Shown: piece by piece, positions 3,179 through 32,000 of the stretch
Layout of the letters: each line of letters starts with the position of its first letter
How positions within the stretch are numbered: position 1 is the first letter of the stretch
Assembly (NCBI GenBank): GCA_054661495.1
Contig: BAAFSQ010000067.1
Location: forward strand, 12,520-44,519
Length of the DNA: 32,000 nt
From: Zygophlyctis sp. KS116
Taxonomy: Eukaryota > Fungi > Chytridiomycota
Direction: 5' to 3'
The notes under the pieces: model-generated
Told to the model about the DNA's origin: nothing
The model's input: only the letters and a program-made list of their open reading frames with translations
Database searches by the model: none
Made by a program: the position numbers and the translations under genes

Positions 3179-3826
3179 ATGCAATACAATCAACTGGCTC
3201 CTCCTCTCAAGGACAAGATAAACCAAGTTGAGAAATTTATAAAATCTCAAATACAATTACAAGAGTCTTTAGAAGGAATAGATTTAGACAAGAAATTCAA
3301 GGAAATAAATTTACAAGTCTTGGAAAATAAACTTGCTGTTGCAACTCTCTCTGTTGAAAAAGACTTTTATAGGATAAATAAGCTCAATTTGCGTGTAAAT
3401 AAGGAATTGAGAAACTCTGATTTAATTTCTCGATACTTGAGTTTAGGAGGTAAAACTAATCAGGATGGATTTTTTAATTATTTTACTAGTTTAACAAGGG
3501 AATTAGAGACTAGAATTGTTGATTTAAAAAACAAATTGGATGAATTAGAGTTGTGTTGTAGGTCAAAAAGGGACTTAGGGTCACCCCTAGTAATTCAAGA
3601 TACAATTATTAGACAAAATGAAGTCTTGTGTTCAATGGCAAATTTAGTGTCTAATTTACATGATCAGATTTCAAAATGTAAAAGAGAATTTTTGGAATTT
3701 TCTAAAAAATATTCAATTCAAGAAGCATCAAGATATTTACCATTATTGGAAAATTCAATAGGGAATAATGGAGTCAAGAGTAAAGAAAGTCTATCTGATA
3801 TTGCTGCTAATTTGATTCCAACTTGA
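3179..3826 (+). CDS. Coiled-coil protein resembling the helical domain of nucleoporin Nup49/Nup58
   Basis: 215-aa intronless ORF. QYNQLAPPLKDKINQVEKFIKSQI and YFTSLTRELETRIVDLKNKLDELE resemble the Nup49/Nup58 helical region (recognised from memory, not searched). Confidence 0.55.
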   Translation: MQYNQLAPPLKDKINQVEKFIKSQIQLQESLEGIDLDKKFKEINLQVLENKLAVATLSVEKDFYRINKLNLRVNKELRNSDLISRYLSLGGKTNQDGFFNYFTSLTRELETRIVDLKNKLDELELCCRSKRDLGSPLVIQDTIIRQNEVLCSMANLVSNLHDQISKCKREFLEFSKKYSIQEASRYLPLLENSIGNNGVKSKESLSDIAANLIPT

Positions 3827-4622: not shown

Positions 4623-5869
4623 ATGGTGTACCTGTTCTTGTGTATGATTGTCGCTATGATTTATGGCAATTTGGATCAATTCGATTGGATTTCAAAATCA
4701 GTCTCATCTGAAGAAATGGTAAAGATGTATCATGACTATAAGCCAAATGATGATTTTCCAAAATCTAGAAATTTCAACACTTCATATGTTCTCGCATATG
4801 TGACTCCATGGAATGGAAAAGGTACATTTGAACTTTTAAATTAAGGCTATGATATTGCAAAAGAATTTAGAGGTATATTACGTTATTAAGGCCGAGGAAA
4901 GTTTACACATATTAGTCCCGTTTGGCTGAATTTAGAGCCCGATGATGCCAGTATATTTAAGATCACTGGGACACATGATATAGATGTAGGATGGATGGAT
5001 CAAGTCAGGCAGGATAATGATGCTCTAATTGTTCCAAGGCTAATATTCTCAAAAATGGCAACCAATCATTACATTTCACTAATTCAAAATGAAACTTTGT
5101 CGCTGGCAGTGGTTGAATTAATTATAAAGAATTTAAAGCATTACAAGTTTGATGGTGTGGTTCTAGAGGTTGGTAAGTTTAGAAATGTCGTGATCTAAAG
5201 GAGTTCCTATACGATATTTGCAGAATTTCATTAAATTCTTATCTAAAGAATTGAAATCTTTATCTAAAAGAATGCAAATATTTCTTGTTATTCCTCCATA
5301 TCATACGTATCATCAAGAAGAATTGGTTTCTGAAAATGATTTGAAACTAATCATTGATTTTATAGATGGGTTAAGCTTGATGACATATGATTACACAGCA
5401 TCTTCTCTCGGTGGTCCAAATGCGCCTATTCAATGGATTTCTGATAATGGTAATGGTTTGTGATTTTTCCTAAATATAGTTGCAAGATTGGATCCGCATG
5501 AACTTTACAGGTCAAAGATATTAATGGGTATGAATCTATATGGATACGATTATTCAAAATCTAATGGTAGACAGGATATTGTAGGCAGTACATTTGTCGA
5601 CATCATCAAGGAAAACTCGGTAACTATAACATGGTCCGAATCTGATGGCGAAGTAATTAAGATTTTTTTACTAAATAATTCAGCATTTTTTCGAGTATCA
5701 AACGCAAGGGGATAGTCATAATTTGTATTATCCCACTTTGCCGGTAATTCAAATTGATATGAACATATAGTCGTTGAATGAAAGAATTAACTTGGCTCAA
5801 AAAATGGGAACTGGTCTTAGCTTGTGGGAAATCGGACAAGGCCAAAATATGTTTTATGAGCTGCTTTAG
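4623..5869 (+). CDS. CHID1: Chitinase-domain-containing protein 1 (GH18 fold, non-catalytic), with signal peptide (~360 aa)
   Basis: VLAYVTPWNGKGYDIAK..GKFTHISPVWL; FDGVVLE (no DxxDxDxE); SLMTYDY; GPNAPIQW; LWEIGQG. Introns 4822-4845 (24 nt), 4873-4896 (24), 5173-5200 (28), 5450-5479 (30), 5653-5683 (31), 5744-5770 (27). Spliced length 1083 nt is in frame. Confidence 0.9.
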
Positions 5870-5880
5870 TTACAGAGTTT

Positions 5881-8368
5881 TTATTTGGATGGGTCAACAA
5901 TTCCAAGAATTTTTTCAAGAGTATTATCTCCAAAAATGTGTTTAATTTGATCTTGCAGCTCCCCTTTCAGAAAATCATCATATGAAAACGATAAATTCGA
6001 AGGATTAGTAGTTCCATCTCTAGTCCAGGTTTGAGACATTCTCTTTTTTGGCCATGTTCTAAGAATCACATCTGATTTTGTCACAACAACTTGATGATAC
6101 CTAAAGATTTAGATCAAGATCCAAACCTACGATTGCGAAGGTGCAGGTGCTTCAGCCTGTTTCTCGAATAATGATTCGTATGATTTTTTCACTTCTGTAG
6201 GCTCATCTGTCTTTGTATTTGTTCCCATACTAGTATGTCCGGAAGTTTTGAGAAACTAAAGTTTAAGTTCCGAACTGCTGCACGCGAAGCCTATTAGAAA
6301 TCACTTTGAAGTTTCATCAAATAATACAAGTACAACTGATTCTTCAATCTCTGTTTCCAAACTCGTATCTTCATTTTTTTCATGCGATTCTATCTTGATT
6401 GCCGTATTTAAAATTGGAACAATCGCTTCTAAATCTGCATTACTATTGTCTATTTCTTTTTCGGGATGTATCAAATCAGATGTGGCTATTTCAGATGCAA
6501 TATTTTCTGTGTCAGGTTCCATGGTGCTGCATATATTCTCTGAAGTGCTTGGCCCCGGCAAATCAAAAGCAGGGACTGATTCCGTCGAGGGGTTCTGCTT
6601 GGCTTCAATATAAACTTCACTGTCACTACTAGTTGGTGATTGTTTTTTGATTAATTGATCGGGAATTTCTAAGCTATCTAATTTTGGCCCGTCTTGTGGT
6701 GCGGCGCTATTTTGGGCCTCTTCTCCGCCCGAAATATGATCGTGCTTTCCATTATAGTCTTCAGAATCTACTTCTGAAATGCTATCGCTAGCAATGCTTT
6801 CTGAAATACCGATAGACTCGCCAGCTTCTTCATCAACAGGGACCAGCGACATTTCATCTTCCTTAATATGGTACGTGTTGTAAATATATTGAAGCGTTTC
6901 ATAAACATTCCAAACAGGAACAGACATTTTTCTTCTTTGACTTTTTCCCAACCCAGTCCAGTCCTGAAAAAATTTGGGCATTGGAGGAAGTTTCAAATTT
7001 AAGTTCATGGCATTCACTCCAAGAGTACTGACTTGTAAGGTGTCTTTTGAAATCCAACTCGGTCTTTCCGGAGAAAAAATTCCAGCAAATTGGATAAATA
7101 CCAAATCTAGGCTATTCTCCAACGATTTTCCATTATCACCAATTTTGAAAATATCCATAATTACACAAATTGTTGTTAATATTCCCAGATCTAGTCTCTG
7201 ATGAAGTACCACACTTTTTCTTAATTTAGAAGTATCATTTTCCAAAAAAGAGATAAATTCACCATCTATTAAAGATTCCTTCTTTTAACCAATAAAATTA
7301 ATACCTTGATTGATAAAAAGAAAATTAGCAGCAGTTGAACCAGAAGTTTAATATCAAGTGTTTCGATCATAGACCATTCTCCACAGTTTATTTTGGATTG
7401 CATTTTTGTAAACTCCTCGCTATTGACATGATAGTCCAAATGCTCAATTTCATCAATTATGATTACCCGATTTTCCTGTATCTGAAATAGTTCCTTGAGA
7501 CGTTTAGAAATTAGATATACTGGCTTTGGAACCCACCTTTAAATTAGAAAAAAACTGCAAGATATAAAGGCCTTTTGACCAAATATTTTTCTTACATACC
7601 TTAGCTTTCTTTGCTCTTTGCCATGAAGGCATATACTCTGATTTTGAAGAATATCCAAGAAAGTTTGAGATGGAGTAGAAATCATTCCTGACATCATCAT
7701 TTGGGGATAATAAAACCGAAGCTTTGTCAAATACGTTCGAAATACATCTAAAAATGCAGTCTGTTTCTTATTCTGAATTGATCCTGGTCTGGCCAATCTC
7801 ACTAGCTGCTGAGCCTCTATTGGAGTCATTTGCTTATCGAATATAAGATACGATGCAATTAATAGTCCAGTTCTTCCCAATCCCGCATGACAATGGACTG
7901 CTACCTTTTTTCCTGATCCAATGAGAAAGGACATTAACTGCACAGCCCCTAGTATAAGTTCGCAATGTGGAATATCCATATCAACCCAGCCATACTGCAG
8001 ATAAGATATTCCTGATTCCATCCAAACTTCTGGTACATAGCTGAAATCACTACCGGGATCTAGCCCATCACCACAAGCCATGTGCTCACCAGGCTGCTGT
8101 AGATTGAAAATTGCACCGATACCTGCCTCCTTAAACTTTCGAATTAAATTGTATTCCCTCATCAGTCGGGTAGAAGGGCGTTGCATAGCCAAAACATTAT
8201 TCGTTATCCTAGCGGTAAGATATGATCATGATACCAGTTACTGTAAAGACCATCAAATGCATTGGTTCCTTGACCAACCCAAAGCTTCCAATTCTCATAT
8301 TTGCAACCTGCTCCACCACAAAAGTAGCAGTGGATCGTAGAAAGTGATCCGGCTGGAGAAATACTCAT
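5881..8368 (-). CDS. PTPDC1: Protein tyrosine phosphatase domain-containing 1-like, with a long acidic C-terminal region
   Basis: CYFCGGAGCKYENW..LYSNWITNNVLAMQRPST; NLQQPGEH..CG; active site VHCHAGLGRTG. Introns 8209-8234 (26 nt), 7537-7599 (63), 7279-7304 (26), 6101-6130 (30). Exon structure around 6250-6330 is unresolved. Confidence 0.88.
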
Positions 8369-24850: not shown

Positions 24851-26707
24851 ATGATTTCTCTTGGATATCTCTTCTTATTGGGAAGTCTGTCAGTTCATGG
24901 CTTTAGCTTTCAAAGTGAGCCTGCAGGTTATACTGATAGGATCAATCGGGTTGTGGGAACTTTAGAGATGGGCTCTGATGCAGACAAGAATGATTTATTT
25001 TCCACAAATGATTTAAAGAATAGTTGGTCATTAATTTTGGAGCAAAGTATACTGCAAAAGAAGAATTCTGCCTTAAGTGCAATTTTGGAATGTCCGAGAT
25101 TAATAGATTGGGCAGGTTCAGATTCTTCAGGATTTCTATTAGCTCCTATTCAGTTTGCAACGGTGCTTAAACAATTAAAGCTTGAAGGTAAATAGATTTC
25201 TAAAAGTAACATATTAGAACATTTTATTTTTGATTATGGTGATCAGGGGAAGATTATTGCTGATTTTGTCTTTAGCCAGGATTCTTTAATTTCTAATCTT
25301 ACAAGAACCACTGACGTTGAAATTGTGAATTTTGTTTTTGGTTGGATGGTATCAATCAAGTCAATTGATCATGTTCGATATATCCTGGATAATCAGTCCC
25401 TGTTTGGCCTAATCTCTGAAAAGAGTTTTGAAAATCAGATCATTCTTTGTCTTCAAGAAGATAATTTAGAGATTTTCAGACTTTTGTTGGAGAATTCAAA
25501 CTCTCTTAAAAGGGTTGTCAAGGATTCAAACTCTATTTGGTCTTCAGTTTTCCCTCGGGTACTAGATTATAATATGAATTTGGCTCAACGAAAGAAGAAT
25601 CGTCCGTCCAAATTGATGTCTTACATCTTGTCTTCAAAAGAAATCATGAAGATGATCAACCCTAAAATTGTATCGTCAATTTGTGATGCTAGTATTTCAA
25701 ACTATGAAAAGCTGGATTTGATTTCAGATAATGCAGAGGCTCTAAGAAAGATTAATAAGGATCAATTGAGTAGAGCACTTTCTGCTGGATTGAAGCGTGA
25801 TGTTATTAGTGAAGTTGTTGCTCGGCTCTGGCTAACTAAACCTGAACTTTCCACATATTTGACACCCGAAATTCTTGGATTAATATTTCTCAAATCTGCT
25901 AAAAAAACTTGGAGAACAATATTTGAGGTAATCATAGATAGAGATGATTTACTGGCTTCAGTGGACGTTGGACTATTGAATAAGGGGATCGCAATTAACA
26001 CTGATAAAAATTTAGATATAATTGGAACAAAATTAATTTCATCTTCTCTTCTTCAGGAAAAGGTTACACGTTTATCTTTGGGAATTCTTTTCTCAAGATT
26101 CCTTGCTTTGCAATATGATAATATTGTAAATGCTTTTTTGGAACGAGACGAACTAATGTCTTTAGTACCTCCTCAATATTTAGCAGAAGGAATTGATTCT
26201 TTGATTGTTGAAGATACTGGGACCAATACCGAAAGCCTTGTTCAATTGTTTTTGACTGACAAATACATTGCCCGTATTACAGATGCTGATTGGTGGACTA
26301 TTGTCAAACATTCCATTCGATTTAACAAAAGAAAAATCTGGACTAAATTTTTCCAACATGATTCTATAATTCGTAGACTTCCTACTACATTCTTAAAGAA
26401 AATCAAGAAATATGTAGAGCAAGACCAGCAGACCGCCATTACACAAATTCTTAAAGAAAGGCCATCAGAAAACATTATGTCTAATGTTAGAAAATATGTT
26501 CATAGATTTAAAGATCGCAGAGTCAAACCTCAAATCAGTTATTCTCTTCCAACATTCAGTCGTGAAGAGATTCAAGCTGAATTTAATGAAATTAAAGATA
26601 TGGTAAAGGAGATGACAAAAGATGGACATGCACTAACTTTAAGTGAAAAGGATAGTTTAATTCATAGAGTTTTGGAAAATCATGTTCCTAAATATGGAGA
26701 AATATAA
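24851..26707 (+). CDS. Predicted secreted protein with degenerate ~34-aa helical repeats (~608 aa), unknown function
   Basis: Signal-peptide-like MISLGYLFLLGSLSVHG. The 30-nt intron 25188-25217 joins ORFs 24758-25195 and 25325-26707 in frame. 34-aa periodicity in the C-terminal half. Confidence 0.7.
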
Positions 26708-26811
26708 TAAATAAGTTCTGAAAGTTTGAAGACGATAAGTCTGTGTACACGACACGAGCGGTCATATTAAAACGCGTTTTAAAGAAGCGTGAGAATACAT
26801 TTATCTTTCAA

Positions 26812-28024
26812 ATGCCATATTCTCAATCAATATTGCTCTTGCTTGTGGCAGGCATGCTATTTACTGGAACAATAAATACTATTTTAAACAAGTTGCAAGA
26901 TTTGACATGCGTTGAAAATTGTGATGCTGATCCATCTCAACAGCATCATTTTGAACAGCCTATATGGCAAACACTCAACATGTTCATCGGAGAAGCATTA
27001 TGTCTAATTGTATATTACGCAAGCAGTTTGTTTGAATCGCGGTCGACGGAAAGCGTAGCTGATCAAGAGTCTCTAAACTCACAAGATCTAAACTCTACTC
27101 AGTCTTTGAATGCTCCGAAAGGTATTGCGATGACAGGAAAATCTAATTTTCTACTTTGGATCCCAACAATGTGTAAGCATTAAACATGATAACTTGTCCA
27201 GGCGATCTTACAGCGACAACACTCATGAATGTAGGTCTTATTTACATTTCAGCATCAATCTATCAAATGCTAAGAGGATCGGTAGTCCTTTTCACTGGAA
27301 TTTTATCATCAATATTTCTTCATCGAAAACATCCACGTTATAGATGGTTTGCTCTATCGACTATATTTTTAGGCGTTGCTATTGTTGGACTAGCTGGAAT
27401 AATTCAAAATGGGAAAACAGCAAAAATATCAATACATGGATCACCGATTGGTATTTTTATGGTTGTTTTGGCTCAAGTTTTTACTTCTATTCAGTTTGTG
27501 ATTGAAGAGAAAATAATGCATAAATACTCTGTTCCTGCTCTAAAAGCTGTCGGTTTAGAGGGAATCTTTGGCTTGATTACAGTTTTGATTGTTCTTCCTA
27601 TTCTACATTTTTCTTATGGTATAAAAGGACCAAAAGGGAATTTCGCTGATGTAGTGACTGGATATCATGAAATGTTTGATAATCCTCAAGTTTGGATTGC
27701 AGGAATAGGAATCATTTTTAGTATTGCATTTTTTAATTGGTTCGGACTAACTGTCACTCGCAGTATATCGGCTACATCCAGATCTACGATTGATACATGC
27801 AGGTAAATATTTCAAGAAATAAGAATAGAACTATATTTATTTGGATCATATCACTAGCTTTAGAATGGGAAACATTCAAATCATTACAAGTGGTTGGATT
27901 TGCGGTGTTAATTTATGGAACGTTTATCTTTAATGATGTGATTCGACCTCCTCCATTAAAAATCCTTGAAGCACCTCAAGATTTGGCAGGGGAAGAAGAT
28001 CCTCTGCTCCAGGGCGTTGAGTGA
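26812..28024 (+). CDS. SLC35F6: SLC35F6-like nucleotide-sugar/DMT-family transporter (~385 aa)
   Basis: MLFTGTINTILNK; FEQPIWQTLNMFIGEALC; CDLTATTLMNVGL..ASIYQMLRGSVVLF; QFVIEEK; SATSRSTIDTCRTIFIW. Introns 27173-27201 (29 nt) and 27803-27828 (26). Confidence 0.88.
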
Positions 28025-28078
28025 TTTTCGCGTTTATAAAATGAAATTGTTTTTATCATTTATCTTGTCCATTGTATG
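27866..28078 (+). repeat. 213-bp perfect direct repeat, copy 1
   Basis: Identical base for base to 29956-30168 (offset 2090). Contains the last 159 nt of the SLC35F6 CDS, the 16-nt spacer and the first 38 nt of the MCFD2-like CDS. Confidence 0.97.
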
Positions 28079-28129
28079 ACAATTTCGATATTCACTCTTA
28101 TCCAAAGGAATATATAGGGGATTTATCTA

Positions 28130-28700
28130 CCATTGTATCGATAACTATAGAAATCAGCTATTGTTTTAATAATTCAATAATACCAACGCCACTCTTGGTA
28201 CTTGAGCATTGAATAGACCCATATACGGAAACCTTAAGAGCAGCTTGACAAATCTTATAATTGCCCATGACTTGAAGCTATTCACTCTAATATATTATCA
28301 AAATATTATAAAAATACCCCCAACTACTTGAAAAAGCCAAAAGATCAAGTGGTAAACTAGAAAGGAGATTAATCCATCCCCATTTAGTTACAAGATACAT
28401 TTTTGTAGCAGCCCCTGAATCTGTAATATGAATCCCATATTCATCCGTAAAAGACAAGTGTGCTGAAAGATAACAATCAATCAAAAAAACAATATCTAGA
28501 CACAAAAAGCAAATAACCCATCCAACAGACATAAACTGAACAAACCATCCAAACAATACCGGAGTTATAACCAAATTTAAAAGATACAGCAGTAGTATAT
28601 ATAGGGGACCGAATAATACCAGTATTTGTTATAAAGTATGTAAAAAGATGATTGGGTTTCCTCCAATATATTGAGGGATATATCATCCAAAATACAAACT
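28130..28700 (-). pseudogene. Displaced 5' half (S1-S4) of a cyclic-nucleotide-binding channel gene; probably disrupted; upstream boundary uncertain
   Basis: YLLNLVITPVLFGW (S1); LDIVFLIDCYLSAHLSFTDEYG (S2); INLLSSLPLDLL (S3); after intron 28287-28317, WAIIRFVKLLLRFP (S4); after intron 28158-28183, LISIVIDTMV, then junction sequence. A stop/frame break lies just upstream of S1 near 28600-28635. Confidence 0.7.
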
Positions 28701-28964
28701 TTTGGCATTTAGCTTTTAGAATCAAATCAGAATCTAAATGTCTAATTTTAAAGGCATCTCTCTGTGCTGTGACACAAACTATAAAATTGGACAGAGCTCT
28801 TACCAATTTGTTGAAACATCAATTTATCGGAGACAGCAATATTGGTTAAAAATGGCTGAGCAGTATGCTGCGTTGCTTCTGAGTTGAAATTTAGATCAAG
28901 AATCTGATTTTTATGTGAAGAATTTAGGAAAACTTAATTTAGATCACATTTTCTTTATGGACAC

Positions 28965-29924
28965 TTAACGTTCAATGATGAACTCTGTCGGTGGGTTTTT
29001 TACATCGTAAAGGTTTCCAGATGGATAAACACAAAAAAATCCTTGGTTGTGTGCATTCTCTCTTATCTCCTTCGGAAACAAGGTACCACACAATACCCCA
29101 ACATACTTTGTACAATTTCTAAACTCTGGTTGGGCGTTGAGCTGAAACTTCTTGAAATCTTTGATTCTTTGAGGCAACTTGTTAACTTGCTTCAAGCTCA
29201 TATTATGCTTAGCTACACAGAGATATAATACATCACCATCTCTAAAGACAGCGCCCCACTCTTGAACAATGGTTTTTTCATCTGGGCCCATAATATCTGT
29301 TGGCATATCTACTACTGAATCAGCAAGCTCATTTAACAAGAAGCGCTTCATGGCCAAGTAAGTTTCTTCCTCCATCGCTCTGTCTTCCAGTTGCTGCCAT
29401 CGCAGTTCGTCAACAAACGACTTTTCGTAGCGAGAATATACATTGTACTTTTCTCCATCAACCAATTGTTCCAACGATGTTATCCGCTTCTTTGGATTGG
29501 ACAACAAATAGAGAGCCGAGCCTTTTCCTTCAAATATCTGCTTCAAGTCAGCTTCTTTTCGGACAACAACCTCTGTAAAACTATCAAGAGGACGACATTC
29601 TTCATCAATATCCTGGACAAAGATATTTTTAATTGATTCTTGAGTTTTCACAAAGACAGGTGATTCATCGGTATTTGGTTCAACAAATTTAGACAATTCT
29701 TCAATTGTAAGTCCAGGGCGAAGTGGAGCATCAGTCAATGTCTTGTGAATGGTGAGTTGATCAGAGGAAATAGCGTTGAGCTTTGGAGAGAGTTTCTTCT
29801 TGATAGCTAGAGTAAAGTCACTGATATTCAAACAACCAGAAGTATAGACTTGAGTTGCTTGACTGCCATTGTGTTTAACCCATAACTTGGCTAGACTGCT
29901 TCTGAAACGAACGATTCTCAACAT
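28965..29924 (-). CDS. Crinkler (CRN)-like protein: ubiquitin-like N-terminal domain plus PD-(D/E)XK restriction-endonuclease-fold C-terminal domain; intronless
   Basis: N-domain pattern KLWVK..QATQV..GC.NISDF..AIKKKLSP.L..DQLTIH..LRPG..N..ESPVFV. C-domain EEE..QEWGAVF..LYLCVAKH..YVGVLCG..A...GFFCVYPSG. Family recognised from memory, not searched. Confidence 0.68.
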   Translation of the reverse strand: MLRIVRFRSSLAKLWVKHNGSQATQVYTSGCLNISDFTLAIKKKLSPKLNAISSDQLTIHKTLTDAPLRPGLTIEELSKFVEPNTDESPVFVKTQESIKNIFVQDIDEECRPLDSFTEVVVRKEADLKQIFEGKGSALYLLSNPKKRITSLEQLVDGEKYNVYSRYEKSFVDELRWQQLEDRAMEEETYLAMKRFLLNELADSVVDMPTDIMGPDEKTIVQEWGAVFRDGDVLYLCVAKHNMSLKQVNKLPQRIKDFKKFQLNAQPEFRNCTKYVGVLCGTLFPKEIRENAHNQGFFCVYPSGNLYDVKNPPTEFIIER

Positions 29925-29955
29925 GTTTTCAAGTTGAAACTAGGGTGACAGTTGG

Positions 29956-30168
29956 TGGGAAACATTCAAATCATTACAAGTGGTTGGATTTGCGGTGTTA
30001 ATTTATGGAACGTTTATCTTTAATGATGTGATTCGACCTCCTCCATTAAAAATCCTTGAAGCACCTCAAGATTTGGCAGGGGAAGAAGATCCTCTGCTCC
30101 AGGGCGTTGAGTGATTTTCGCGTTTATAAAATGAAATTGTTTTTATCATTTATCTTGTCCATTGTATG
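29956..30168 (+). repeat. 213-bp perfect direct repeat, copy 2
   Basis: Identical to 27866-28078. Here the SLC35F6 tail is orphaned and the MCFD2-like ORF continues intact. Confidence 0.97.
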
Positions 30169-30538
30169 TGCGGTTGAGCCGGACTTTGGAGATATTCACT
30201 CTGATCCAAAGGATTTTAGAAAGGATTTTATTGCTCATCATAAAAGAGATGATAATGTTGGTGATGTCAAGTAAATTCCAATCATTTACTCTAGAGCGTC
30301 AGAAATTTTTGATGAGGATCAAAACGATGATACGTTTTACTGGTTTAGCCTTCATGATTATAATCATGATGGGTTTCTTGATGGGCATGAATTGAGGTAT
30401 GCATGGATGGCGTCTGATCCGTCGAAATATACAAAAGAAATCGCTGAGACAATGGTAGATAAGATTCTGGAAAAGGATGATTTAGATAATGATGGAAGAA
30501 TATCTTGGGAAGAATATTTATCTGCTAATAATAAATAA
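30131..30538 (+). CDS. MCFD2: MCFD2-like secretory-pathway two-EF-hand protein (~127 aa)
   Basis: Signal peptide MKLFLSFILSIVCA; 24-nt intron 30271-30294; FYWFSLHDYNHDGFLDGHEL and VDKILEKDDLDNDGRISWEEY. Confidence 0.8.
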
Positions 30539-30550
30539 AATTCTGTCCGA

Positions 30551-31909
30551 TTATGACTTTGTATTGCTAAATGATCGTGATTGTCGACCTGGTGTTGTTA
30601 GGAATGGTTGAGTTGTTGAAGGGGCTCTGAAAGATGGTGATTTCAGAAATTGTCTTTGCGGATTAATGTCTTGTTTTGATGACATGTTTGAAACAGGTTG
30701 ATGTTGATCTCTAGAAATGATGCTAGAGGCAAGTGATGCAATACTTCCAAAGATTGATGATTTTGGACGAATCTCTCTTTCTAATTTTGCCTGAGCTTCT
30801 CTTTCTTCTTCTAGCTTTTTAGCGGCTTCCAGAGCTGCCTGTTCTGCCTTTTTACGCATTTCATTTTCTTCTCTTTCCTTGATTGTGCGTTGAATTCGTT
30901 CAGAAATGATTGGGAATTGAGTTAAAATAAAGTTGTAATCATCTTTGGTCAGCATGCATAGTTCAACATTTCCTTTTGCTCTAGCTGATGCAGTTCTTTT
31001 ACAATCTAATTGATAAGTTTGATAAATGTTACTTTTAAAAAGTGCAATTTCCCCAAAGAATGATCCTGTTCCTAATGTTACAAATATTTGTCCAGAGTCT
31101 CCCACAATCTCTACTTGTCCTGATTTAATAAAGAACATTTCTTGTCCTTCATCATCCTTTCTAAATATAAAACATCCTTCAATGATATGTATAGGCTAGA
31201 TTTTTTAATTAAGATATAGGTACCTTTATCTTTAAAGACACAGAATATTGAAATTGAATGTCTGTATCCTGGAATAGCGGGACTTTTTTAACCAGATCCA
31301 AATATAAAAAGTTTTTGATTTCTTGTTGAAGAGATTTAGGAAGGTCGTCAAAGAGTTTTGCTTCATCAACACCTTGACTTCGCATCCACTGTAACTCTTT
31401 GTGAGAGTTTACCATCTTCAATTATTTTATGTTTGGTGTACCTTTTGTAGCTCTGGAATAATACCCTTTTCTCTCATATACTGTCTCAGCCTATCCATCT
31501 CAAATTTATGTCGTTCCTCTAATAACTTAGTTTTCAAATTGTATTATACCAGCCTGACTTGATATAACCGTATCATCCATCATTTCTACAATACCTAGAA
31601 TTAGAAATATTGGTATTTACTATGTATATTCCCAAATACAGTGCCATATGCTAAAATTCCAGCTATAAATTCAAAAACAACATAAACGTTTTCTCCATCT
31701 TTATATGCACTCCGAAGTTTGAGAACCAGGGACTTTAAAGCTGAAATATAACTCACAAGATATTGTGTAGAGAATACAGCTTCTGATAGGTGCTCCTTGT
31801 CTATCCATCGCGGAGGACTAAGACAAGACTCTAAAAACCAAAATAAGCATCCATCAATATGACCAAGTACAAGTAAAACAACCATTGTCTTGATCAATCT
31901 AGAAATCGG
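30551..31909 (-). CDS. 3' half (S5-pore-S6, C-linker, cNMP-binding domain) of a CNG/HCN/KCNH-superfamily channel
   Basis: GHIDGCLFW (S5); GILAYGTVFGNI (S6); LFDDLPKSLQQEI..LVKKVPLF; EMFFIKSGQVEIV..GSFFGEIALF..RTASARA. Introns 31595-31620 (26 nt), 31519-31549 (31), 31416-31441 (26), 31196-31223 (28), 31006-31032 (27). Spliced length 1221 nt is in frame. Confidence 0.88.
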
Positions 31910-32000
31910 CTTGCCGCTAGAGTAGAAAGACCAGTAGAAAGCAATGGCTTTTTAAAATTGACGCATGTTCCAAATTTAGCTGACAATTCTTCAATGCTAA
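31910..32000 (-). other. Fragment resembling a second Crinkler-like N-terminal domain, running off the window edge
   Basis: 31971-32000 caaatttag[ctg]acaattcttcaatgctaa aligns with 29684-29710 caaatttagacaattcttcaattgtaa. Translation SIEELSAKF..N..KPLL versus TIEELSKF..N..SPVF. Confidence 0.45.

Follow-up and report, generated by a model that had tools for sequence, protein, structure and literature searches.

A Crinkler-type cassette flanked by direct repeats of host DNA in the chytrid Zygophlyctis sp. KS116: a candidate insertion with tandem target duplication

Host gene row, direct repeat and empty site

The DNA considered here, termed the window, is a 32,000-nt stretch of the chytrid fungus Zygophlyctis sp. 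KS116 (assembly GCA_054661495.1) that forms the last 32 kb of contig BAAFSQ010000067.1 (contig C67), its right end being the end of the contig. Within it a Crinkler (CRN)-type gene with a nuclease fold lies between two copies of a direct repeat of host sequence. The host genes form a compact row consisting of an SLC35-type transporter, an EF-hand (MCFD2-like) gene and, on the opposite strand, a cyclic-nucleotide-binding channel gene. The transporter is assigned by EamA/nucleotide-sugar-transporter Pfam matches on the exon that precedes the last exon, and the MCFD2-like gene by EF-hand Pfam matches on the next exon. The last intron of the transporter has approximately 26 nt (27803–27828), and a spacer of only 16 nt (28025–28040) lies between its stop codon and the ATG of the following gene. 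The G+C content of the DNA is approximately 35%.

The repeat, termed R, occupies positions 27866–28078 and 29956–30168. The two copies have 213 nt, are 100% identical in the assembly, display a spacing of 2090 and are found at these two places only across the 12.7-Mb assembly (1175 contigs). As the original prediction had it, R is pure host sequence, being composed of the transporter end, the 16-nt spacer and the first 38 nt of the MCFD2-like gene. The 1877 bp between the copies contain an intact, intronless minus-strand open reading frame (ORF) of 319 amino acids (aa) and a piece of the channel gene, both likewise described in that prediction. In what follows, A denotes the sequence left of 27866, j the segment 28079–28156, Bl the channel piece 28157–28590, the cassette the 1365 bp from 28591 to 29955, and C the segment 30169–31910 (Table 1).

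Segment j, which follows the left copy of R, shows similarity to both ends of C. When extended by blast, the match between the R copies reaches 28124 on the left and 30228 on the right at 84% identity, past a 14-nt indel. Positions 28129–28155 align to 31881–31907, the bases of C that immediately precede its natural junction with Bl, with 22 of 27 positions identical and a score of 34; the maximum among 2000 random window segments is 26. Read from these alignments, j is two decayed ends of C and not a patchwork of snippets.

Freshwater metagenomes are the best holders of the window sequence, and Logan contigs from four runs were placed on positions 26500–32000. One of these runs, X4, is a freshwater metagenome from a different study than the source sample and another, X7, belongs to a third study. 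Contigs of both X4 and X7 run from 31908 straight into 28157, the shorter arm being 45 and 93 nt, and these direct joins indicate that the natural channel gene is contiguous, C being followed by Bl. Bl in turn continues into contig C10, the first 77 nt of which correspond to 28509–28585, after which the channel N-terminal region is encoded. Since Bl naturally follows C and is also situated between j and the cassette, it is present twice in the population.

As read from the sequence, the left side of the cassette thus consists of R, C with approximately 1.65 kb deleted, and Bl, and the right side consists of R and C, naturally followed by Bl. The insert is bordered on either side by a copy of a single contiguous ancestral stretch, the layout that defines a tandem segmental duplication with an insertion at its junction. 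The 213 bp are the surviving identical block of a duplication of approximately 2.39 kb (213 + 1740 + 434) and not the whole duplication. The remnants of both C ends in j, together with the second copy of the channel 5′ end, point to a target of approximately 2.39 kb that was duplicated and whose left copy then lost approximately 1.65 kb. It follows that the 213 bp, taken in the original prediction for a target-site duplication, are what remains of a longer one, and that the channel piece, taken there for captured cargo, is part of the duplicated target.

The duplicated target begins at 27866 in the last exon of the transporter, includes the MCFD2-like gene and ends in the channel gene, in the region of the first membrane helix. 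After the duplication all three host genes retain an intact copy: R copy 1 supplies the end of the transporter, R copy 2 the start of the MCFD2-like gene, and the complete channel gene lies to the right. Nothing but a redundant MCFD2 copy and a channel fragment lacking its 5′ part was lost with the deleted stretch.

Compared with X4, the window shows 7 differences in the 78 positions of j and 2 in the 213 of R, which indicates unconstrained drift in j. One half of each R copy has no function and would be expected to drift too. The likeliest explanation for the identity of R is gene conversion across the uninterrupted homologous block, with the 14-nt indel as its right bound; identical repeats next to decayed remnants could alternatively result from mutagenic repair at the deletion. 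The perfect identity may also be partly an assembly effect, one collapsed graph node having been traversed twice. The source sample's own Logan contig of R shows a G>A variant at position 30080.

The junctions are found in independent samples. An X4 contig (record 12) spans 27866–28412, i.e. R, j and the start of Bl, and displays 15 single-nucleotide polymorphisms (SNPs) relative to the window. A second X4 contig (record 14) spans 29305–29985 and runs from the ORF through its 31-nt flank into R, of which it includes the first 30 nt, while an X7 contig (record 29) covers 29887–30145 and crosses from the CRN gene into R. Repeat junctions that carry SNPs in metagenomes of other studies are not chimeras of the source library. 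An empty site is present in a relative, represented by a 2.65-kb JGI metagenome contig (L034) with 85% protein identity and approximately 75% DNA identity. Its order is transporter, MCFD2-like gene and channel 3′ end, with nothing between, and the insert is therefore derived. This is the empty allele that the original prediction had proposed to look for, and its proposal of a real insertion is borne out by the junctions as well.

Table 1. Positions of the features at the locus (window coordinates)
Feature	Position	Strand	Remarks
R copy 1	27866..28078	+	Functional 3′ end of transporter (stop 28022–28024), 16-nt spacer, dead MCFD2-like start (ATG 28041)
Start-of-C remnant, diverged (pseudo-MCFD2 exon 1)	28079..28124	+	28087–28124 vs 30191–30228: 84%, after 14-nt indel
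End-of-C remnant, diverged	28129..28156	+	28129–28155 vs 31881–31907: 22/27; junction of the ~1.65-kb deletion just left
Channel gene 5′ part (N-terminal membrane), second copy	28157..28590	-	In independent samples, directly after 31908
30-nt terminal motif of dispersed element family	28591..28620	+	Left end of cassette; adjoins duplicated target exactly
Non-coding block of ~95 nt	28708..28801	-	77% identical to block at equivalent place downstream of the Ubl-HNH gene of C98
319-aa intronless ORF, two Ubl domains and C-terminal PD-(D/E)xK domain	28965..29924	-	Conserved acidic positions are G224 and V237
31-nt 5′ flank of ORF, right end of cassette	29925..29955	-	No recognisable terminus
R copy 2	29956..30168	+	Dead transporter tail, then functional MCFD2-like start (ATG 30131)
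Segment C	30169..31910		Rest of MCFD2-like EF-hand gene (+); channel 3′ part (-), pore region and cyclic-nucleotide-binding domain
Contig end, 5′ end of P-type ATPase (contig C210), inverted	31911..32000	-	90 nt, 1 SNP; junction specific to source sample

The nuclease-fold protein and the cassette terminus

A search with the 319-aa ORF yielded 76 homologs, and no precomputed Pfam domain is attached to any of them. Identity to the window protein is 95% for a metagenomic copy, 62–64% for Batrachochytrium dendrobatidis proteins and only 44% for the closest paralog of the same genome. The closest named relatives are proteins of B. dendrobatidis, Globomyces, Coelomomyces and Amoeboaphelidium. An AlphaFold model of the full protein, built with 27 homologs, has a pLDDT of 78.5. 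Residues ~12–162 match ISG15 and di-ubiquitin (Foldseek E 1e-6, probability 1.00) and thus represent two ubiquitin-like (Ubl) domains. The C-terminal domain (residues 170–319), when folded alone, gives a pLDDT of 85.3 and a pTM of 0.79. Its top structural matches are nearly all PD-(D/E)xK nucleases, with Z values of 8.7 for AF1548, 8.5 for NucS (NucS/EndoMS), 8.4 for Can2 and 7.7 for McrC; further matches are Card1, PaqCI and CdiA-CT (VIA Z range 8.7–5). The restriction-endonuclease fold that had been proposed for this ORF is therefore seen in the predicted structure. Searching PDB sequences with a profile of the nuclease domain gave nothing significant.

The family displays a near-invariant D followed by E-x-K, and this motif is kept in at least 90% of the homologs. 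In the window protein G224 and V237 are found at the conserved D and E positions, whereas the 95%-identical relative keeps both acidic residues. With both of them replaced, the window protein probably does not cut DNA, and on this sequence evidence the nuclease is probably inactive in this strain. The window and the 95%-identical copy differ by 14 non-synonymous and 7 synonymous codons, a ratio that indicates relaxed constraint.

The Crinkler (CRN or CR-effector) architecture as defined by Zhang et al. (2016; in PMC5289972) has an N-terminal ubiquitin-like header and a C-terminal enzymatic 'toxin' domain. The window protein shares the Ubl header and a C-terminal domain of this kind, which here has the restriction-endonuclease (PD-(D/E)xK) fold, and its family is large and patchy in chytrid-grade fungi, with the B. 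dendrobatidis relatives cited above. It differs in having two Ubl domains and no NTPase or kinase partner domain, in the replacement of both conserved acidic residues, and in missing the Pfam Crinkler family PF20147, the N-terminal domain with the LxLFLAK-type motif, for which it gives no match at E<=10; among the homologs, 7 of 27 match that family weakly (best E 5.4e-4). The predicted fold thus speaks for a Crinkler-type architecture; activity as a nuclease is not supported.

At its left end the cassette has a 30-nt motif (28591–28620) of which the genome contains at least 37 copies, distributed over both strands, as compared with 0 for the reversed control. At every copy one side is unique and the other side falls into sub-families of ~80–450 nt. 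Many contigs stop 77 nt into the motif, which is often situated 48–77 nt from contig ends, as results from a repeat in a k=77 assembly graph. No frame is open across the copies, and a coding function for the motif was therefore rejected. Contig C11 (L073 717–3296) contains a 2.58-kb palindromic element with inverted copies of the motif at both ends and a 6-bp target duplication. Another apparent case is given by the ends of contigs C223 (L047) and C71 (L045), which appear to be halves of one short-chain dehydrogenase gene split by an element, with 77-nt identical inverted ends and a 6-bp duplication. From these inverted pairs with 6-bp duplications it follows that the 30-nt motif is an element terminus. 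By eye, each of the ~700-bp arms of the C11 element carries a small ORF and an ORF with a Crinkler-type-looking header, the latter with no Pfam match.

The original prediction, which reported neither element termini nor a transposase or reverse transcriptase, thus overlooked the terminus. No inverted partner of the terminus is found within 27000–32000, where the best match (16–17 of 30 positions) equals noise. No reverse transcriptase is present within the insert, and no transposase in or near the readable terminus copies, the interiors of most motif-bearing elements having been read only to 1.5 kb. With a single terminus and no Pfam transposase among the window ORFs, the cassette shows neither the paired inverted termini, bounded by a short target duplication of fixed length, nor the enzyme of a cut-and-paste DNA transposon. 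As regards a possible non-LTR retroposed copy, the terminus is situated at the 3′ end of the strand of the ORF, which is intronless, and there is no A-tail.

A Polinton origin, considered because of the 6-bp duplication, the AG start and the long inverted arms, was rejected, as the genome has no protein-primed polymerase and its integrase (rve) matches are mostly long retrotransposon-type frames on short contigs. At least 142 rve matches are found in the whole genome, many of them in frames of 1100–1500 aa on contigs of 3–9 kb; they look like numerous copies of long terminal repeat (LTR) retrotransposons in a genome that is otherwise very compact. Rfam and tRNA scans of 27000–32000 showed nothing above noise, and an Atlas look-alike search gave no usable match.

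Similar cassettes at other loci of the genome

Five other nuclease cassettes of 1.3–2.4 kb in this genome are flanked by near-identical direct duplications of local host DNA of 150–1002 bp. On contig C569 (L004) a 150-nt repeat (98.7% identity) surrounds a 1852-bp insert with a 38%-identical paralog that has an intact motif; the repeat covers the beginning of a host gene, the remainder of which is found only beyond copy 2. The 1304-bp insert of C14 (L018 and L082), with a Ubl-header ORF, lies between 653-nt repeats (99.7%) formed by the end of one gene and the start of a thiolase gene. C98 (L085, L025 and L084) displays a repeat of 1002 nt (99.9%) around a 2015-bp insert that carries a Ubl-HNH gene (Pfam HNH_2), and C27 (L008) a repeat of 245 nt (94.7%) around 2447 bp with an ORF that combines Ubl and the PD-(D/E)xK motif. 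C7 (L074) has a 543-nt repeat (100%) and an insert of 1400 bp, in which the same 30-nt terminus as in the window is found 6 nt after the repeat, and a PD-(D/E)xK-motif ORF is oriented as in the window. The test put forward in the original prediction, whether paralogs have long, locus-specific flanking direct repeats, is thus positive for five other nuclease or CRN-type loci (150, 245, 543, 653 and 1002 bp). Where this was looked at, the layout leaves the genes on both sides intact. As to the shared termini named in the same test, the 30-nt motif is common to the window and C7 and absent from C569, C14, C98 and C27.

In approximately 110 kb of other loci of the same genome, such repeats are found at two loci only, C7 and C129, both of which bear the terminus. 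At C129 (L076, C129:16000–21500), positions 1–102 and 5400–5501 form a 100% identical direct repeat with a spacing of 5399 that is cut by the locus ends and surrounds a terminus copy at 3690 on the minus strand.

A search for common cassette ends yielded none beyond the 30-nt motif of the window and C7 and a non-coding block of approximately 95 nt shared by the window and C98. This block (28708–28801 vs L025 1501–1600) is 77% identical and is situated downstream of a restriction-endonuclease-type gene in the window and of an HNH-type gene in C98; short inverted repeats lie within it. GGATCT was considered as an entry motif common to the loci and likewise rejected, being present at C7 and neither at the window nor at the other four loci. 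The loci have no common att core and no recombinase gene.

History of the insertion and comparison with known systems

The history that we favour, with a probability of roughly 0.62, is that a Crinkler-type cassette of 1365 bp inserted with a tandem duplication of approximately 2.39 kb of the target, the cassette being placed exactly at the junction of the copies, and that the left copy was later shortened by a deletion of approximately 1.65 kb. Of this history, the geometry, the empty site, the junctions in independent samples, the fold and the recurrence at five other loci are shown, whereas the order of events and the mechanism are inferred. As regards the junctions, a defined terminus meets the duplicated target precisely at its right edge in the window and in C7, the other end is undefined, microhomology amounts to 0–1 nt, and the duplications measure 0.15–2.4 kb. 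A cassette with two Ubl domains and a restriction-endonuclease-fold gene would enter the compact row of transporter, MCFD2-like gene and channel gene. Its one defined terminus would be end-joined to the target, and the second end would be resolved by host repair or replication. Strand breaks hundreds to thousands of bases apart, or a restart of replication upstream, would lead to a single tandem duplication of the target of approximately 2.39 kb. Selection would then keep only insertions whose duplication spares both neighbours. With spacers of 16 nt, only insertions that restore both neighbours would survive, and the 'gene-sparing' appearance may come from this filter alone. The redundant left copy would subsequently lose approximately 1.65 kb internally, leaving R, the two short decayed stretches of C in j and the 5′ fragment of the channel gene, and R would be kept identical, or nearly so, by gene conversion, possibly aided by assembly collapse. 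Template-switching replication and Campbell-type integration of a circle are also possible mechanisms.

Several points weigh against this history. No read or contig covers A, R, the insert, R and C in one piece, and the assembly graph is equally compatible with an empty chromosome and a 2090-bp circle. The natural passage from 31908 to 28157 is not seen in the source sample, whose contig enters an inverted ATPase fragment at 31910 instead. The fragment differs by one SNP from positions 1–90 of contig C210 (L031). This 31910|31911 junction is supported by the sample's own contigs and represents either a further rearrangement in that strain or a low-coverage path lost by both assemblers. The remnants are 16–19% diverged while R is identical, which demands gene conversion or mutagenic repair. 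Pfam transposase domains are absent from the ORFs of the window and from the tested ORFs of the other cassettes, and the 30-nt terminus is found in two of the six cassettes (window and C7), being absent from C569, C14, C98 and C27. Microhomology of 0–1 nt at the junctions is not what classical template switching would leave, and it matches no named transposon. Finally, no long direct flanks are found within 5 kb around the B. dendrobatidis homologs.

The first of these points leads to a rival explanation in which the chromosome is empty and R, the remnants, the channel fragment and the cassette form a 2090-bp circle or tandem array that the assembler threaded into the contig. R has two entries and two exits in the graph with no spanning piece, the cassette word depth in the source sample is 126 as compared with 66.6 for the left flank (approximately 2x), and recombination between the direct repeats would give exactly such a circle. 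In X4, however, the depth of the cassette (4.0–4.1, approximately 1x) equals that of the flanks (3.5–5.8), which argues against a multicopy episome. The integrated path is the one chosen by the assembler, and each of the six loci would need its own circle with locus-specific host DNA. Such a circle would still presuppose a prior integrated state, and we consider an extrachromosomal form unlikely.

Insertion of a CRN-family element between the transporter and MCFD2 with a true target-site duplication of 213 bp and capture of channel cargo is quite unlikely, even though the repeat is perfect with sharp edges, the channel piece directly adjoins the element terminus, and flanks of other cassettes are in a similar size range (150–245 bp). 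Cargo capture predicts neither the decayed copy, directly after R copy 1, of the sequence that follows R copy 2, nor the decayed copy, directly before the channel piece, of its natural upstream sequence. One duplication of 2.39 kb and one deletion, by comparison, account for every segment in order.

A passive local rearrangement, in which resident genes underwent tandem duplication and deletions and the CRN gene is an old immobile neighbour, agrees with the geometry, which is that of a tandem duplication, and with an insert that carries no transposase or reverse transcriptase. The original prediction had listed this as its alternative, and the duplication part of it stands; a version in which no insertion occurred does not. 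Where the natural channel gene continues into C10 there is no CRN gene, and the next long ORF shows no nuclease or Crinkler features. The relative has no CRN gene between transporter and MCFD2, and in other genomes the homologs are found in unrelated contexts with no conserved synteny. Moreover, the cassette starts with a dispersed element terminus and the same layout surrounds unrelated nuclease genes. We regard this reading as decidedly unlikely. A chimera of assembly or whole-genome amplification with no biological counterpart is most improbable in spite of the uneven depths in the source sample (54–207) and the odd inverted ATPase-fragment junction 1.8 kb away where the contig ends, because the passages from R through the remnants to the channel fragment, and from the CRN gene to R, occur with SNPs in metagenomes of other studies.

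Returning to insertion with a tandem target duplication, no named element class fits the terminus, the open other end, the 0–1 nt microhomology and the duplications of 0.15–2.4 kb together. In maize, alternative transposition of Ac/Ds gives direct duplications in tandem that have a transposon between the two copies. The order target, element, same target is common to both, as are long variable duplications and a precisely joined element end. However, Ac/Ds duplications arise from pairs of resident elements and measure kilobases to megabases, whereas the present case involves one small cassette with one recognisable end, duplications of 0.15–2.4 kb and no transposase found. Campbell-type integration of a circle, as in integrative plasmids and the att logic of prophages, resembles the locus in its long flanking repeats of host DNA, its intact neighbours and the possibility of recombinational excision. 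It differs in that the circle must carry locus-specific host DNA beforehand, and the recombinase gene and common att core are missing here. One-ended transposition and atypically long target duplications, e.g. those that occur occasionally at LINE-1 insertions, share with the cassettes one fixed terminus and a variable other end, and the orientation of the ORF to the terminus is constant in the window and C7. In this case the differences are that the cassette has no poly(A) tail or reverse transcriptase and that the terminus also exists in inverted pairs bounded by 6-bp duplications, in the manner of cut-and-paste DNA elements. In Phytophthora infestans, CRN arrays are Helitron-associated and arranged tail-to-head (Haas et al., 2009, cited in PMC5289972). 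There too CRN genes are tied to mobile DNA and local duplication, but the unit here is a single gene in a duplicated target; Helitron ends and Rep/helicase were not noticed, no search for them having been made.

It is a tentative suggestion that these loci represent a new insertion mode, used by selfish nuclease ('CR-toxin'-type) and other cassettes, that duplicates 0.15–2.4 kb of the target. If true, such a mode would, with spacers of 16 nt, leave the upstream gene its 3′ end and the downstream gene its 5′ end. It could be due to a dedicated one-ended or nuclease-assisted mechanism, or to a repair pathway visible only in such genomes. Crinkler-type proteins are usually treated as effectors, and their link to mobile DNA comes mostly from domain ancestry. 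The present locus offers a dated and structurally resolved insertion of a Crinkler-type gene with an empty site in a relative, and an unusual footprint that is common to several unrelated nuclease genes in one genome. The spread of such genes, and the tolerance of insertions in a genome nearly without intergenic DNA, become testable questions. For annotation some caution is advised, as a perfect 213-bp repeat is easily misread as a target-site duplication and a channel fragment as cargo.

Two further observations concern the homologs in B. dendrobatidis. In two strain assemblies (L086 and L087) the same 318-aa homolog and right flank are found with different left flanks. The breakpoint is at locus position 4972, 29 nt upstream of the ATG, and the second left flank resembles that of a paralog locus (L088). 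This switch of flanks suggests ectopic exchange at these genes, or misassembly. In B. dendrobatidis JAM81 and a second assembly (L089 and L090), an inverted repeat of approximately 70 nt with 81% identity (4828–4897 and 6502–6568) brackets a homolog at 5001–5999, and a third copy of this repeat is present at 921–1001.

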